DNA from: Macrostomum lignano
Taxonomy: Eukaryota
DNA length: 64,000 nt
Reading direction: 5' to 3'
Assembly (NCBI GenBank): GCA_002269645.1
Contig: NIVC01000553.1
Span: forward strand, 474,260 to 538,259
Below, piece after piece: positions 46,501 through 57,061 of the stretch; position 1 is the first letter of the stretch, and each line of letters starts with the position of its first letter. A program made the position numbers and the translations under genes. The notes below the pieces were generated by a model. The model searched no databases. It was not told the DNA's origin and was given only the letters and a program-made list of their open reading frames with translations.

Positions 46501-49500
46501 AGGCATTGTGAGAAGTTTCTAGGAATCGAAGGACATTATGAGGATCGTCTAGAAATCGAAGGACATTGTGAGGAGTTTCTAGGAATCGAAGGACATTGTG
46601 AGGATCGTGTAGAAATCGAAGGACATTATGAGGAGTTTCTAAAAATCGAAGGGCAATGTGAGGAGTTTCTAGGAATCGAAGGACATTATGAGGATCGTCT
46701 AGAAATCGAAGGACATTGTGAGGAGTTTCTAGGAATCGAAGGACATTGTGAGGATCGTGTAGAAATCGAAGGACATTGTGAGGAGTTTCTAGGAATCGAA
46801 GGACACTGTGAGGAGTTTCTAGGAATCGAAGGACATTATGAGGAGTTTCTAGGAAACGAAGGACATTGTAAGGAGTTTCTAGGAATCGAAGGGCATTATG
46901 ATGAGTTTCTAGAAATCGAAGGACATTATGAGGATCGTCTAGAAATCAAAGGACATAGGGATGAGTTTCTAGGAATCGAAGGACATTGTAAGGAGTTCCT
47001 AGAAATCGAAGGACATTGTGAGGAGTTTCTAGAAATCGGAGGACATTATGAGGATCGTCTAGAAATCGAAGGACATAGGGATGAGTTTCTAGGAATCGAA
47101 GACATTGTGGTGTGTTTCTAGAAATCAAATGACACTGTAAGGAGCTTTTAGGAATCCTAAGAGATCGTGTGGATTTACTAGGAACCGAACGAGATTGTTG
47201 GAGCACTAAGCCGCTAATGAACAATGCCATGAGTTTCCAGGAATCAAAGACATTGAGGCGCCTTTGTTAGCTGTGAAAGGACGGCATGAGCGGCCGGATT
47301 TGCGCTAAACGGACTCACCAGTTCCATAGGCCTGCAGAGCGCAGATGAGGCCCAGCTCAACCAGATCGAACTGAAACCGAGAAATCGGCGGGCTGGCCAG
47401 TCTGGCCGCGTGAGCCCCGATCACGGCGGCCAGCTGCGGGAAGCGACGCCGCAGTCGGACCATCTGGACGCTGGTTGGCGACTCCAGCTCGGCGTCCTCG
47501 CAGCCGATGCTGGCGCCGTCGAACGCCTGGGCGAGCAGCAGCACCGGATAGAAGCTTCGAGCCAGCAGGCGGCTTCTGAGTCGCCAATCGAGAGTGGCCA
47601 GGCCCGGCAGCTGCTGGCAGAAGGTCTGGACAGCGCGGCCAAGCTGACGAAGGCGACTCAGCACGGCCTTGGAGCCGGTTTCGTCAGAGTCTTCGTCATC
47701 AACGGATTCTTCCGCATCTTGCAGCGCCACAGCCCGCAGAGCCGCCTGCAGCCTTGAAAATGCTTGCCTGACGCTTTCAATGAAATCGTTGTCGGCTGAT
47801 GAAGCTGCAAAAGAAGCAGCTGTTGAGGATTCTGGTTGATTATGATGCAGCGCCTGATGCTGCTGCTGCTGCTGCTGTGTCTGGCAGGCGAGGTAGTCCT
47901 GATGCTGCTGATGCTGAGCTGCAGGATGCTGCAGTTGAAATCCCTGCATCTGCTGGTGATGCTGGTGCAGCATCTGCTGCTGCTGCTGCTGCAGTTGGTG
48001 ATGCTGGAGGTGATGAGGCTGGCGATGCTGTCGGGTCTTGTTGATCTCTTTGATCTCCTGGGCGCACAGGTGCTTCACGGCGTTCGGCTGGCGACCGATT
48101 CGGCTGCCTAAGGAATTCGAAAGACGAAGGAATTCAGTAATTTGCTTATCGGTCTACTTGCAGTAGGATTTTCAGGCTGTCGTGTATAGAAATGTTCCAG
48201 ATAAAAATCCACGTGATAGCATGATACGGCCAGAAACTAAGATATAAACTTTTGATCACAATATAAAAGATTAACATTATGGGGTACACTAGGACAATCA
48301 CTGAGATACTAAGACAGGCTCTAAGACAGGCACTGAGACAGGCACTGAGACAGACACTAAGACAGGCACTAAGACAGGCACTGAGACAGACACTAAGACA
48401 GACACTGAGACAGGCACTAAGACAGACACTGAGACAGACACTAAGACAGACACTAGACAGACACTAAGACAGGCACTGAGACAGACACTAAGACAGACAC
48501 TGAGACAGGCGCAAAGACAGACACTAAGACAGACACTAAGACAGGCACTGAGACAGACACTAAGACAGGCACTAAGACAGACACTAAGACAGACACTAAG
48601 ACAGACACTGAGACAGGCACTAAGACAGGCTCTAAGACAGACACTGAGACAGACACTGAGACAGACACTAAGACAGACACTGAGACAGGCGCAAAGACAG
48701 ACACTAAGACAGACACTAAGACAGGCACTGAGACAGACACTAAGACAGGCACTAAGACAGACACTAAGACAGACACTAAGACAGACACTAAGACAGACAC
48801 TGAGACAGACACTGAGACAGACACTAAGACAGGCACAAAGACAGACACTAAGACAGACACTAAGACAGGCACAAAGACAGACACTGAGACAGACACTAAG
48901 ACAGGCGCGAAGGCAGACACTAAGACAGACACTGTTATAGGCCGACTGTCAAAACATTATCAGCAATCATTGCAGAAGAGTTCTATAGATTCGACATTTC
49001 AGCTGTCAAATTTGCCACTTTTCAACAACAACAAGCGAGTGGGGTAAGAGAAAAAAACACAAGGGATGATCACTGTCCCCGGGTGTCAGTCCAGTGTTCA
49101 CTGAATATTTAGCGTCAGTATTTGCGAGGCATTAAAGCTTAACGGGTGGGCGGGGAGGGCGGATTTTATTTTGGGATCGCGAGGTGTTAAGAGAGAAGGA
49201 GATCTCAAAAACCCCAAAGCTCTCTGTGTGCCTGGCACTTCAAGCAAGGCCTTGAAAGCTCGAGAGAGAGAGAGAGAGAGAGAGAGAGAGTTAAGGAAAG
49301 AGATGATGCCGCCTTCCCCTTCGCTCAATTCGGAATGGGGGGTTGTCGGTCTCCTAGGAGCGGCGGCGGCGGCGGCGGCGGCGGCGGCGGCCCAGATTCC
49401 AGAAACGAGGTCCTCACTAGCGCCGGGCAAGCCGTCTCTACAGCCAGTTGTGTGCCAGCTCTGTCTGAGGCTCAGCCGTCGGCTAAATAAAATATGCTCG

Positions 49501-55500: not shown

Positions 55501-57061
55501 AGATAGATAGATAGATAGATAGATAGATCGATAGATAGATAGATAGATAAATAGATAGATAGATAGATAGATAGATAGATAGATAAATAGATAGATAGAT
55601 AGATAGATAGATAGATAGATAGATAGATAGATAGATAGATAGATAGATAGATAGATAGATAGATAGATAGATAGATAGATAGATAGATAGATAGATAGAT
55701 AGATAGATAGATAGATAGATCGATAGATAGATAGATAGATAGATAGATAGATAGATCGATAGATAGATAGATAGATAGATAGATAGATAGATAGATAAAT
55801 AGATAGATAGATAGATAGATAGATAGATAGATAGATAGATAGATAGATAGATAGATAGATAGATAGATAGATAGATAGATAGATAGATAGATAGATAGAT
55901 AAATAGATAGACAGACAGACAGACAGGACAGAACTCACCAGGCGGGAACATATTCAGCATGAGGCACTTCTTGTACCGGCAGTGCTGGCAGTGAGTCCTG
56001 GTCTCCTTGGTAACGTCGCAGCGGCCCACCTTGCTGCAGCTGTATTTGATCCCCAGCCCGCCCTGCATCCCGGCCCTGGTCGACCTGATGAAGAACTTCT
56101 TGCAGGCCTCGCACACGAAGGCGCCGCAGTGAAATCCGGCCGCGGTGTCGCCGCAGACGTCGCAGGCTCGACGTTCGACAGCCTTGAAGAGGCACAGCTC
56201 GCCGGGGTCGCCCGCTCCTCCTGGCGTCGCTGAGTGCTCATCTGAGCCAGACGGCTGTCTTTGATGCTGCTGCGGCAGCTGCGGTGGCGGCTGCTGCTGC
56301 CGCTGCTGAAGCTGCTGATGGTGCATTTGTTGATGGTCCGCAAACTGCTGCTGCTGATACTCATGGTAAGTCTGCTGGTGATATGCCTCGGCGGTGCTGA
56401 GGTAGATCGGTGAGCCATCCTGGTGCTGGACTTGTTGCTGCTGCTGCTGCTGCTGCTGATGATGATGATGATGATGAGGATGATTATGGAGCGTCGATGG
56501 ATGCTGCAACTGGTGTTGCTGATGCTGGTGATACTGCATGTGGCTGCTGTCAAATTGCTGCTGCTGCTGCTGCATCGCTGAGCAGTCGTTCGTCTCCGAG
56601 GTTGACGCGTTGGCGGCCACTTGCACATGACTGGCTGCGATGTACTCTGGTGGAAGATGAGGCATCGCCTGCTGCTGCTGGTGCTGCTGGAAGGCTGCAG
56701 CCGGTGCCCCGTTGCTGACCAAGGTGTAGCTGGCAAAGTACACGTGCGTCTGGGCGGGTACACCGTCGAGTCCGTGACCGCCTGACCAAGAGGGTTCTAC
56801 TGGCAAACAGCTGGGCTTCACGTCTTGCAGGAGCAGAGATGAAGGAGTCTGGCCTGGCTGCTCTGGCGGACTGTGTTGTTGTTGCTGCTGCTGCTGCTGC
56901 TGAGGATGCTGATGAGTCAGAGTGAAGTAGCTCATCTGATGTCCAATTGGGCTGATTTCCATCGACTTCTCTAGGAAACTGTCCGATGGCTGAAGCTGCT
57001 GTTGCTGTTGCTGTTGCTGTTGCTGCTGCACTGTCCGAGAGCACGCTGTTATTGTCATCAT
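43531..57061 (-). CDS. 2DBD-NR: Two-DNA-binding-domain nuclear receptor (A/B-DBD-DBD-hinge-LBD), about 856 aa
   Basis: Exons 57061-55939 (polyQ A/B region and DBD1, P-box CEACKK), 51261-51155 ([24 protein letters not shown]), 50749-50602 ([16 protein letters not shown]), 48107-47319 (SRIGRQPN; [13 protein letters not shown]), 46120-45977, 44451-44219 (PLFE, AF-2-like) and 43557-43531. Phases are consistent; the last two exons are less certain. Confidence 0.9.
43695..44105. repeat. 21-bp minisatellite (TCTCCCAATCTCAGTGTCTCA)
   Basis: Tandem copies. Confidence 0.93.
44521..44745. repeat. (GATA)n microsatellite
   Basis: Tandem GATA. Confidence 0.97.
46365..47165. repeat. 30-bp minisatellite (CTAGGAATCGAAGGACATTGTGAGGAGTTT)
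   Basis: Tandem copies in an NR intron. Confidence 0.92.
47319..48107 (-). CDS. 2DBD-NR hinge (polyQ) and LBD core exon
   Basis: Acceptor ttccttag, donor ACTG|GTGAGT; LBD signature [23 protein letters not shown] and [11 protein letters not shown]. Confidence 0.88.
48300..48935. repeat. 12-bp minisatellite (ACAGACACTAAG)
   Basis: Tandem copies. Confidence 0.93.
49750..50545. repeat. 30-bp minisatellite (GGAGGTGATGGTGCAGCACTGAAGGATCTG)
   Basis: Tandem copies after donor 50601. Confidence 0.93.
50602..51261 (-). CDS. 2DBD-NR second DBD (two exons, 51261-51155 and 50749-50602)
   Basis: CEGCK|GFF P-box split by a phase-0 intron; second finger [16 protein letters not shown]. Confidence 0.93.
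50860..51085. repeat. GA-rich simple repeat within the DBD2 intron
   Basis: GGGAGA tandem units. Confidence 0.85.
51305..52195. repeat. Composite minisatellite with ~111-bp higher-order unit built from CCCGATGTGTCTTTG-like subunits
   Basis: 37-aa periodicity in overlapping spurious ORFs. Confidence 0.88.
52905..53520. repeat. CT-rich degenerate repeat (CATCTCTCCCT)
   Basis: Low-complexity tandem units. Confidence 0.85.
54000..54900 (-). pseudogene. Possible highly degraded DNA-transposase remnant in the intron between DBD1 and DBD2
   Basis: Stop-interrupted peptides such as [17 protein letters not shown] and LSFACHH, reminiscent of hAT-like transposases. Confidence 0.25.
55072..55928. repeat. 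Long (GATA)n microsatellite directly after the DBD1 donor
   Basis: About 850 bp of tandem GATA. Confidence 0.97.
55939..57061 (-). CDS. 2DBD-NR exon: polyQ/H N-terminal region and first DBD
   Basis: [25 protein letters not shown]...[10 protein letters not shown]; donor CCTG|GTGAGT. The SIYL tail in the ORF track is intronic (GATA)n. Confidence 0.93.

Follow-up and report, generated by a model that had tools for sequence, protein, structure and literature searches.

Ancient nuclear receptor splice junctions at the tandem DNA-binding domains of a Macrostomum lignano 2DBD receptor gene

Introduction

Nuclear receptor genes share four known conserved splice junctions, among them JP1, located inside the DNA-binding domain (hereafter DBD), as well as JP2, which falls in the fourth codon after it (Wu, Niles & LoVerde, PMC2045677). 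A subset of these receptors possesses two DBDs (2DBD receptors, for group A of which an EACKK-EGCKG P-box module is defined; PMC1810520, PMC10497141), and the origin of the extra DBD has so far been described just as 'a recombination event', as proposed by Wu et al. in 2007 (PMC1810520). Here we analyse the exon-intron organization of one such gene from Macrostomum lignano, contained in a stretch of 64,000 nucleotides (nt) of contig NIVC01000553.1 (assembly GCA_002269645.1, positions 474,260 to 538,259 of the forward strand; hereafter the window). The region studied is the DNA-binding core of BOX15_Mlig015099g4 (protein PAA81052.1). Each of its two DBDs is followed by a phase-1 intron at the same position; these shared introns are two copies of the ancient JP2, and the intron inside the second DBD (DBD2) is the equally ancient JP1.

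JP2 is also present in nuclear receptor genes of vertebrates. Two further systems invite comparison with the two-exon cassette that encodes DBD2. Exon-shuffled class 1-1 modules (Patthy) are domains lying between two phase-1 introns, which can be moved or removed without a frameshift; the DBD2 cassette is likewise bounded by two phase-1 introns, but it consists of two exons, belongs to an intracellular transcription factor and would owe its symmetry to the re-use of a pre-existing junction. In the delta-exon-3 variant of estrogen receptor alpha, one zinc finger is removed in frame and DNA binding is altered, as has been observed experimentally. The likeness to the present gene is the in-frame loss of DBD coding sequence, whereas here a whole DBD would be lost and the skip is a predicted one only.

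The gene had already been named and annotated, and JP2 was already known as a family-wide site. What we add is a modest refinement, namely that JP1 and JP2 are both duplicated across NR7, the subfamily proposed for these receptors; this point is not stated in the open 2DBD papers, the founding paper of the family from 2006 (PMID 16406405) lying outside that search. Neither 'intron' nor 'exon' appears anywhere in the 2023 paper (PMC10497141), and 'intron' occurs once in that of 2007 (PMC1810520), in a figure legend where exon and intron are indistinguishable.

Results and Discussion

Two copies of JP2 in one gene

The gene is encoded on the minus strand. Its exons were read by eye and then checked by script, exons 5 and 6 being located with the help of the annotated M. 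lignano protein. The order of exons and introns is the following:

55939..57061, minus strand, coding exon 1: ATG at 57061; Gln/His-rich A/B domain and the complete first DBD (DBD1, with CEACKK); donor GTGAGT, phase 1
51262..55938, minus strand, intron 1: 4677 nt, phase 1; the JP2 copy after DBD1
51155..51261, minus strand, DBD2 exon A: 107 nt, phase 1 to 0; 13-residue linker and first zinc finger; ends with CEGCK at JP1
50750..51154, minus strand, intron 2: 405 nt, phase 0; JP1
50602..50749, minus strand, DBD2 exon B: 148 nt, phase 0 to 1; GFFRR and second zinc finger
48108..50601, minus strand, intron 3: 2494 nt, phase 1; the JP2 copy after DBD2
47319..48107, minus strand, exon 4: 789 nt, phase 1 to 1; carries the C-terminal extension, the poly-Q hinge and the start of the putative ligand-binding domain (LBD)
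46219..46317, minus strand, exon 5: 99 nt, phase 1 to 1; putative LBD
45972..46120, minus strand, exon 6: 149 nt with the stop codon counted in; C-terminus

The junctions at the ends of the two DBDs both lie eight residues past the last Cys and in phase 1 (between 55939 and 55938, and between 50602 and 50601). DBD1 closes with TGC CTC ATG CTG AAT ATG TTC CCG CCT G in front of the donor GTGAGT, which reads C-LMLNMFPP followed by the opening base of a Gly codon, and DBD2 closes with TGC ATC CGC GCC GGC ATG TCC TCC GAT G in front of GTGAGG, reading C-IRAGMSSD plus G. A previous reading of the window from its letters alone (hereafter the sequence-only reading) had claimed this common offset and phase, and both manual reading and script find the claim exact to the base. 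When aligned by BLASTP, DBD1 and DBD2 are 42% identical and the last 20 columns of the alignment are gap-free; the two introns therefore occupy the same alignment column, in the same phase.

The site at the end of DBD2, GM-S-S-D-G, is JP2 as defined, being located in the fourth codon after the DBD-closing GM and in phase 1. Both conserved junctions (PMC2045677) are found in the window gene at the same sites and in the same phases, JP1 standing after the CK of the P-box, where exon A ends with CEGCK and the donor GTGAGT in phase 0 (between 51155 and 51154). Compared with the conserved nuclear receptor junctions, the window gene possesses JP2 twice; JP1 also occurs twice in relatives, but it has been lost from DBD1 of the window gene, exon 1 running uninterrupted through that domain with no inter-finger intron.

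The acceptor of DBD2 exon A is CCATCCGCAG (also given as CCCATCCGCAG), that of exon B is CTACTCTGCAG and that of exon 4 is TTCCTTAG; exon 4 opens at 48107, where G+GC yields Gly. With GTGAGT, GTGAGT and GTGAGG as donors and good pyrimidine tracts in the acceptors, the splice sites around the cassette are strong, by consensus reading rather than a scoring model; every donor of the gene is either GTGAGT or GTGAGG. Along the gene the intron phases are 1, 0, 1, 1, 1 (four of the five in phase 1). The two DBD2 exons measure 107 + 148 = 255 nt, or 85 codons, as had been counted before, and the earlier statement that their omission would join DBD1 in frame to the hinge exon is borne out by a scripted join of exon 1 to exon 4 (55939 to 48107). 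Dropping exon A alone or exon B alone breaks the frame.

Assignment to the 2DBD receptors

Translation of the six-exon model is exactly PAA81052.1 (P0193, BOX15_Mlig015099g4, 804 amino acids (aa)). In an exhaustive search of protein cluster representatives with a 200-residue query, a 100% match was obtained to P0041 (802 aa), the cluster of which consists of four M. lignano proteins, BOX15_Mlig015099g1 to g4. PAA81052.1 falls into one 90% cluster with the near-identical PAA89302, which appears in Wu & LoVerde 2023 as Ml2DBD-NRA1, a group A receptor of the proposed NR7 subfamily (PMC10497141). The window gene is one copy of M. lignano 2DBD-NRA1 (NR7A); no difference separates it from Ml2DBD-NRA1 (PAA89302 / PAA81052.1), which is the identical gene.

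Two stretches were matched by Pfam zf-C4 (E=4e-44), corresponding to two tandem C4 zinc-finger DBDs, in both of which the patterns C-x2-C-x13-C-x2-C and C-x5-C-x9-C-x2-C are readable. The P-boxes, CEACKK in DBD1 (VCEACKKFF) and CEGCKG in DBD2 (TCEGCKGFFRR), fit group A. The spacer between the DBDs, counted from ...LNM to the first Cys of DBD2, comprises 17 residues and lies in the range of 17-22 residues given for NR7 group A (PMC10497141); the conserved His after the G-box is present, as in group A.

An LBD signature-like stretch in exon 4 and a C-terminal LLDEL can be read by eye. Pfam Hormone_recep, by comparison, had no match in exon 4 or in the candidate downstream reading frames, even at E<=1, and when the hinge and LBD part of exon 4 was used as a query for homologues, no match was returned at E<=0.001. 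The LBDs of flatworms are divergent, and that of the window gene is probably too divergent for Pfam detection.

The four near-identical M. lignano copies (P0041, P0192, P0193 and P0194; g1-g4) differ in the length of their poly-Gln/His tracts and in a few substitutions. The 471-aa model among them has its N-terminus cut inside DBD1.

JP1 and JP2 in related genes

The sequence-only reading had proposed a comparison of intron positions in 2DBD orthologues and NR1 outgroups, and had named a lack of conservation in other 2DBD genes as telling against it; the positions were found to be conserved. For the relatives, an exact splice-aware script placed the predicted proteins on their loci in the genome, and the hinge exon was sought by hand where a model read through the donor. 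We refer to the phase-1 junction about eight residues past the last Cys as 'end' and to the phase-0 junction after ...C-x-x-CK as 'inter-finger'. The states below are given in the order DBD1 inter-finger; DBD1 end; DBD2 inter-finger; DBD2 end.

Window gene: absent; present; present; present
Capitella P0001 (L001): present; present, same position (148-nt exon); present; present (148 nt)
Capitella P0004 (L008): present; present, 2 codons downstream; present; present (148 nt)
Helobdella P0005 (L002): present; present, same position (148 nt); present; present (148 nt)
Rotaria P0002 (L003): present; present, same position (145 nt); present, plus one extra intron; present (148 nt)
Lottia NR7A P0003 (L004): present; model donor 2 codons early; present; present (148 nt)
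Lottia NR7B P0155 (L011): present; present, 1 codon early; present (107-nt exon); present (145 nt; hinge VKIGRPRK)
Branchiostoma P0020 (L007): not seen; present, same position; present; present (163 nt; hinge IRMGRQPNYLKH)
Cichlidogyrus P0011 (L006): not seen; present, same position; present (107 nt); absent (fused to the hinge)
Metagenomic eukaryote P0013 (L010): absent; absent; absent; present
Brachionus P0016 (L009): absent; absent; absent; absent (no introns)

JP1 is found in both DBDs, in phase 0 after CK, in the two Capitella genes, Helobdella, Rotaria and both Lottia NR7A and NR7B; in these relatives outside the flatworms, DBD1 and DBD2 have both introns in common. The displaced junctions at the end of DBD1 in Capitella P0004, Lottia NR7A and Lottia NR7B keep the phase of the others. 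In Lottia NR7A, a better donor (GTAAGC) is present at the exact canonical site, two codons downstream of the donor chosen by the model. Hinge exons that follow JP2 at the end of DBD2 start with xSRIGRQ, IRMGRQ or VKIGRP, in phase 1. The junctions are conserved across NR7A and NR7B, several protostome phyla and one chordate, with scattered lineage-specific losses, and because the shared position of JP2 recurs in relatives of several phyla, it is not due to chance.

The same two junctions are present in a single-DBD receptor gene of the NR1 group from the mussel Potamilus (P0021, E75/Rev-erb-like), where JP1 follows CEGCK in phase 0 and JP2 falls between CLNAGMSQD and A-VRFGRMPK in phase 1, the second-finger exon being 145 nt long. 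Since JP1 and JP2 belong to this gene and to those described in the literature, the match between the two DBDs of the window gene is an inherited family trait.

Several loci show peculiarities of their own. At the Branchiostoma belcheri locus (L007), a partial second copy of the first-finger exon of DBD2 (WFHFGVDTCEGCK) is located about 300 nt downstream (19831-19943 and 20251-20303), and the gene is split into two annotated models, through either local duplication or an artefact of assembly or annotation. The 2DBD paralogue of Brachionus calyciflorus (L009, 5001-6038) is intron-free across both DBDs and the hinge and looks retrogene-like. In the gene of the metagenomic eukaryote (L010, 6001-6606), the sole junction kept is the one after DBD2, with an intron of about 60-70 nt.

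Many database models of 2DBD receptors (P0082, P0085, P0096-P0098, P0104, P0126) are devoid of the second finger of DBD1 or of DBD1 as a whole, and often begin exactly at the boundary of a DBD2 exon. Those with half of DBD1 missing (P0082 and P0085) and those without DBD1 (P0096-98 and P0104) resemble errors of annotation. According to the paper on the Lymnaea genome (PMC11589774), 2DBD orthologues seemed to have a single DBD, a remark for which faulty database models probably account.

How the extra domain arose

In the sequence-only reading, the common junction was taken as the footprint of a tandem exon duplication. One part of this idea is supported, namely an ancient duplication at the level of DNA, introns included; the other, a tandem origin within this gene specifically, is not, JP1 and JP2 being inherited family-wide and both present in a single-DBD NR1 gene. 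Both DBDs retain both ancestral introns in NR7 genes, and the extra domain was therefore copied as genomic DNA and not as a processed (retro) copy, which agrees with the recombination proposed in 2007 (PMC1810520). The retained introns thereby provide concrete evidence for copying of genomic DNA before bilaterians diversified.

The best explanation as a whole is probably that the window gene is a 2DBD-NRA1 copy in which JP1 and JP2 were anciently duplicated as genomic DNA and the DBD2 cassette is constitutively included. The event would have been an intron-retaining duplication or recombination of the two-exon DBD cassette, with its 3' breakpoint in the JP2 intron. Located beyond such a breakpoint, the exon for the C-terminal extension would have remained uncopied, and this would explain why an NR1-like extension (SRIGRQPN..., compare VRFGRMPK) follows DBD2 only. 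The same breakpoint would account for the spacer between the DBDs, composed of the four residues after GM and a short stretch preceding a DBD. The ancestral NR7 layout would then have been first finger, phase-0 intron, second finger, phase-1 intron, linker with first finger, phase-0 intron, second finger, phase-1 intron and hinge. The duplication would be older than both the split of NR7A from NR7B and that of protostomes from deuterostomes, JP1 of DBD1 having later been lost in M. lignano and other junctions in other lineages; the 1-1 symmetry of the DBD2 cassette would be a consequence of this re-use of JP2.

Several observations weigh against this account. One or all of the junctions are missing in Cichlidogyrus, Brachionus P0016 and the metagenomic gene L010. 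The outgroup sample consists of one single-DBD locus (Potamilus), the broader generality of JP2 being taken from PMC2045677 and from vertebrate genes. Upstream of DBD1, no intron stands at the matching place in the window gene, Capitella or Lottia, where the frame is open for at least 50 codons, and no convincing phase-1 acceptor was found upstream of DBD1 in Capitella, Helobdella, Rotaria or Lottia; without such an intron, the 5' boundary of the duplicated unit cannot be seen. The intron upstream of the DBD in the Potamilus NR1 gene is in phase 0, not phase 1. Mean identity between DBD1 and DBD2 is 45.0%, against 45.1% between DBD1 and the DBDs of ordinary receptors, a crude comparison for which the single-DBD control set was small and partly contaminated by truncated 2DBD models. 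Constitutive inclusion of the cassette in the present gene, likely on the evidence at hand, is deduced from annotated proteins only.

Some of these points bear on a different origin of the upstream DBD, which might have been captured from a neighbouring or recombined receptor gene, by fusion or by exon shuffling via the phase-1 JP2 intron. We consider such a capture possible, if rather doubtful. Any receptor DBD would bring JP1 and JP2 along, both being common to single-DBD NR1 genes, and the introns therefore cannot separate a duplication of the receptor's own DBD from a capture. DBD1 is as distant from DBD2 as it is from ordinary DBDs (45% vs 45%), and DBD1 and DBD2 form separate monophyletic groups, each sister to NR1 (Wu et al. 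2007, PMC1810520); both points speak for capture. Tandem duplication, on the other hand, takes fewer steps, although there is no specific counter-evidence to capture, and the P-box of DBD1, unique among receptors (PMC1810520), fits rapid divergence after duplication and capture alike.

Inclusion or skipping of the DBD2 cassette

From the frame-preserving symmetry of the cassette, it had been suggested that one gene could make both 1-DBD and 2-DBD isoforms. This suggestion found no support: DBD2 is part of every one of the four annotated M. lignano copies, with no join of DBD1 to the hinge among them (0/4), and a DBD1-type domain joined directly to the hinge motif was seen in 0 of 182 related proteins. 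These tests are indirect ones; clustering at 50-90% identity hides isoforms. The literature on 2DBD receptor isoforms contains a sole report, in which the Echinococcus 2DBD gene has an alternative 5' site in its hinge (PMC6844482), and nothing on DBD skipping.

Regulated skipping of both DBD2 exons would produce a single-DBD receptor combining DBD1, with its CEACKK, and the C-terminal extension normally carried by DBD2; this is improbable. The predicted join is in frame and leaves as many residues between the last Cys and the hinge extension as there are in DBD2. The 1-1 symmetry is, however, shared by exon 4 (789 nt) and exon 5 (99 nt), so that in-frame skipping is weak evidence, and the presence of DBD2 in all four M. 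lignano copies, the lack of a DBD1-hinge protein among the 182 relatives, the GTGAGT/GTGAGG donors and the good pyrimidine tracts of the acceptors all argue against it. The introns flanking the cassette are kept in annelids, the mollusc, the rotifer Rotaria and amphioxus; the loss of the DBD2-hinge intron in the monogenean flatworm Cichlidogyrus and of all introns in the Brachionus paralogue P0016, also of a rotifer, makes a conserved skipping mechanism unlikely.

The cassette is also flanked by tandem arrays in inverted orientation, which have a GTGTCT core in common (intron 1, 51307-52196; intron 3, 48304-48933). Complementarity between flanking introns favours exon skipping or circularisation in other systems, and the RNA duplex predicted here has an energy of -557 kcal/mol, versus -482 +/- 14 kcal/mol for composition-matched dinucleotide shuffles. 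This energy is mostly a matter of base composition, though, and such arrays are abundant in the genome. The inverted arrays could favour looping-out or circularisation, or could be there by chance in a repeat-rich genome, and we treat them as a curiosity; that pairing of the intron 1 and intron 3 arrays helps the cassette to be skipped or circularised in some M. lignano cell types seems very improbable. If true, switchable 1-DBD and 2-DBD isoforms would matter for the choice of receptor targets, as one NR7 gene would then give rise to a two-DBD receptor and to a DBD1-only receptor reading DNA via the otherwise unique CEACKK P-box.

Another candidate looping structure, between GA-rich and CT-rich intronic arrays, was rejected as compositional, its pairing reaching at most 211 nt at 70% complementarity, no better than shuffles.

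Independent insertion of the introns at similar proto-splice sites, which would leave them uninformative about the origin of the second DBD, is compatible with the G/G context of both junctions but is scarcely credible, given that one column and phase recur in both DBDs, across NR7A and NR7B, in five or more phyla and in the NR1 outgroup, and that there is a second shared junction, JP1.

Repeats in the introns and elsewhere in the window

About half of each of introns 1-3 (48108-55938) consists of tandem array:

55073-55923, intron 1: (ATCT)x213; starts 15 nt past the exon 1 donor
52906-53473, intron 1: array of a 12-mer, x47
51307-52196, intron 1: array of a 22/111-mer; ends 46 nt before DBD2 exon A
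50865-51079, intron 2: (CTCTCC)n / (GAGAGG)x36 array
49762-50542, intron 3: array of a 30-mer, x25
48304-48933, intron 3: array of a 12-mer, x53

The 12-mer array of intron 3 has 38 matches in the window, all of them in intron 3. Elsewhere, the long open reading frames at 35414-36601 (plus strand), 43605-44184 and 61502-63025 consist throughout of short repeated peptides (such as NKQPSQQTTVTTNNRH, over 395 aa); they arise from minisatellite arrays and most likely are no genes.

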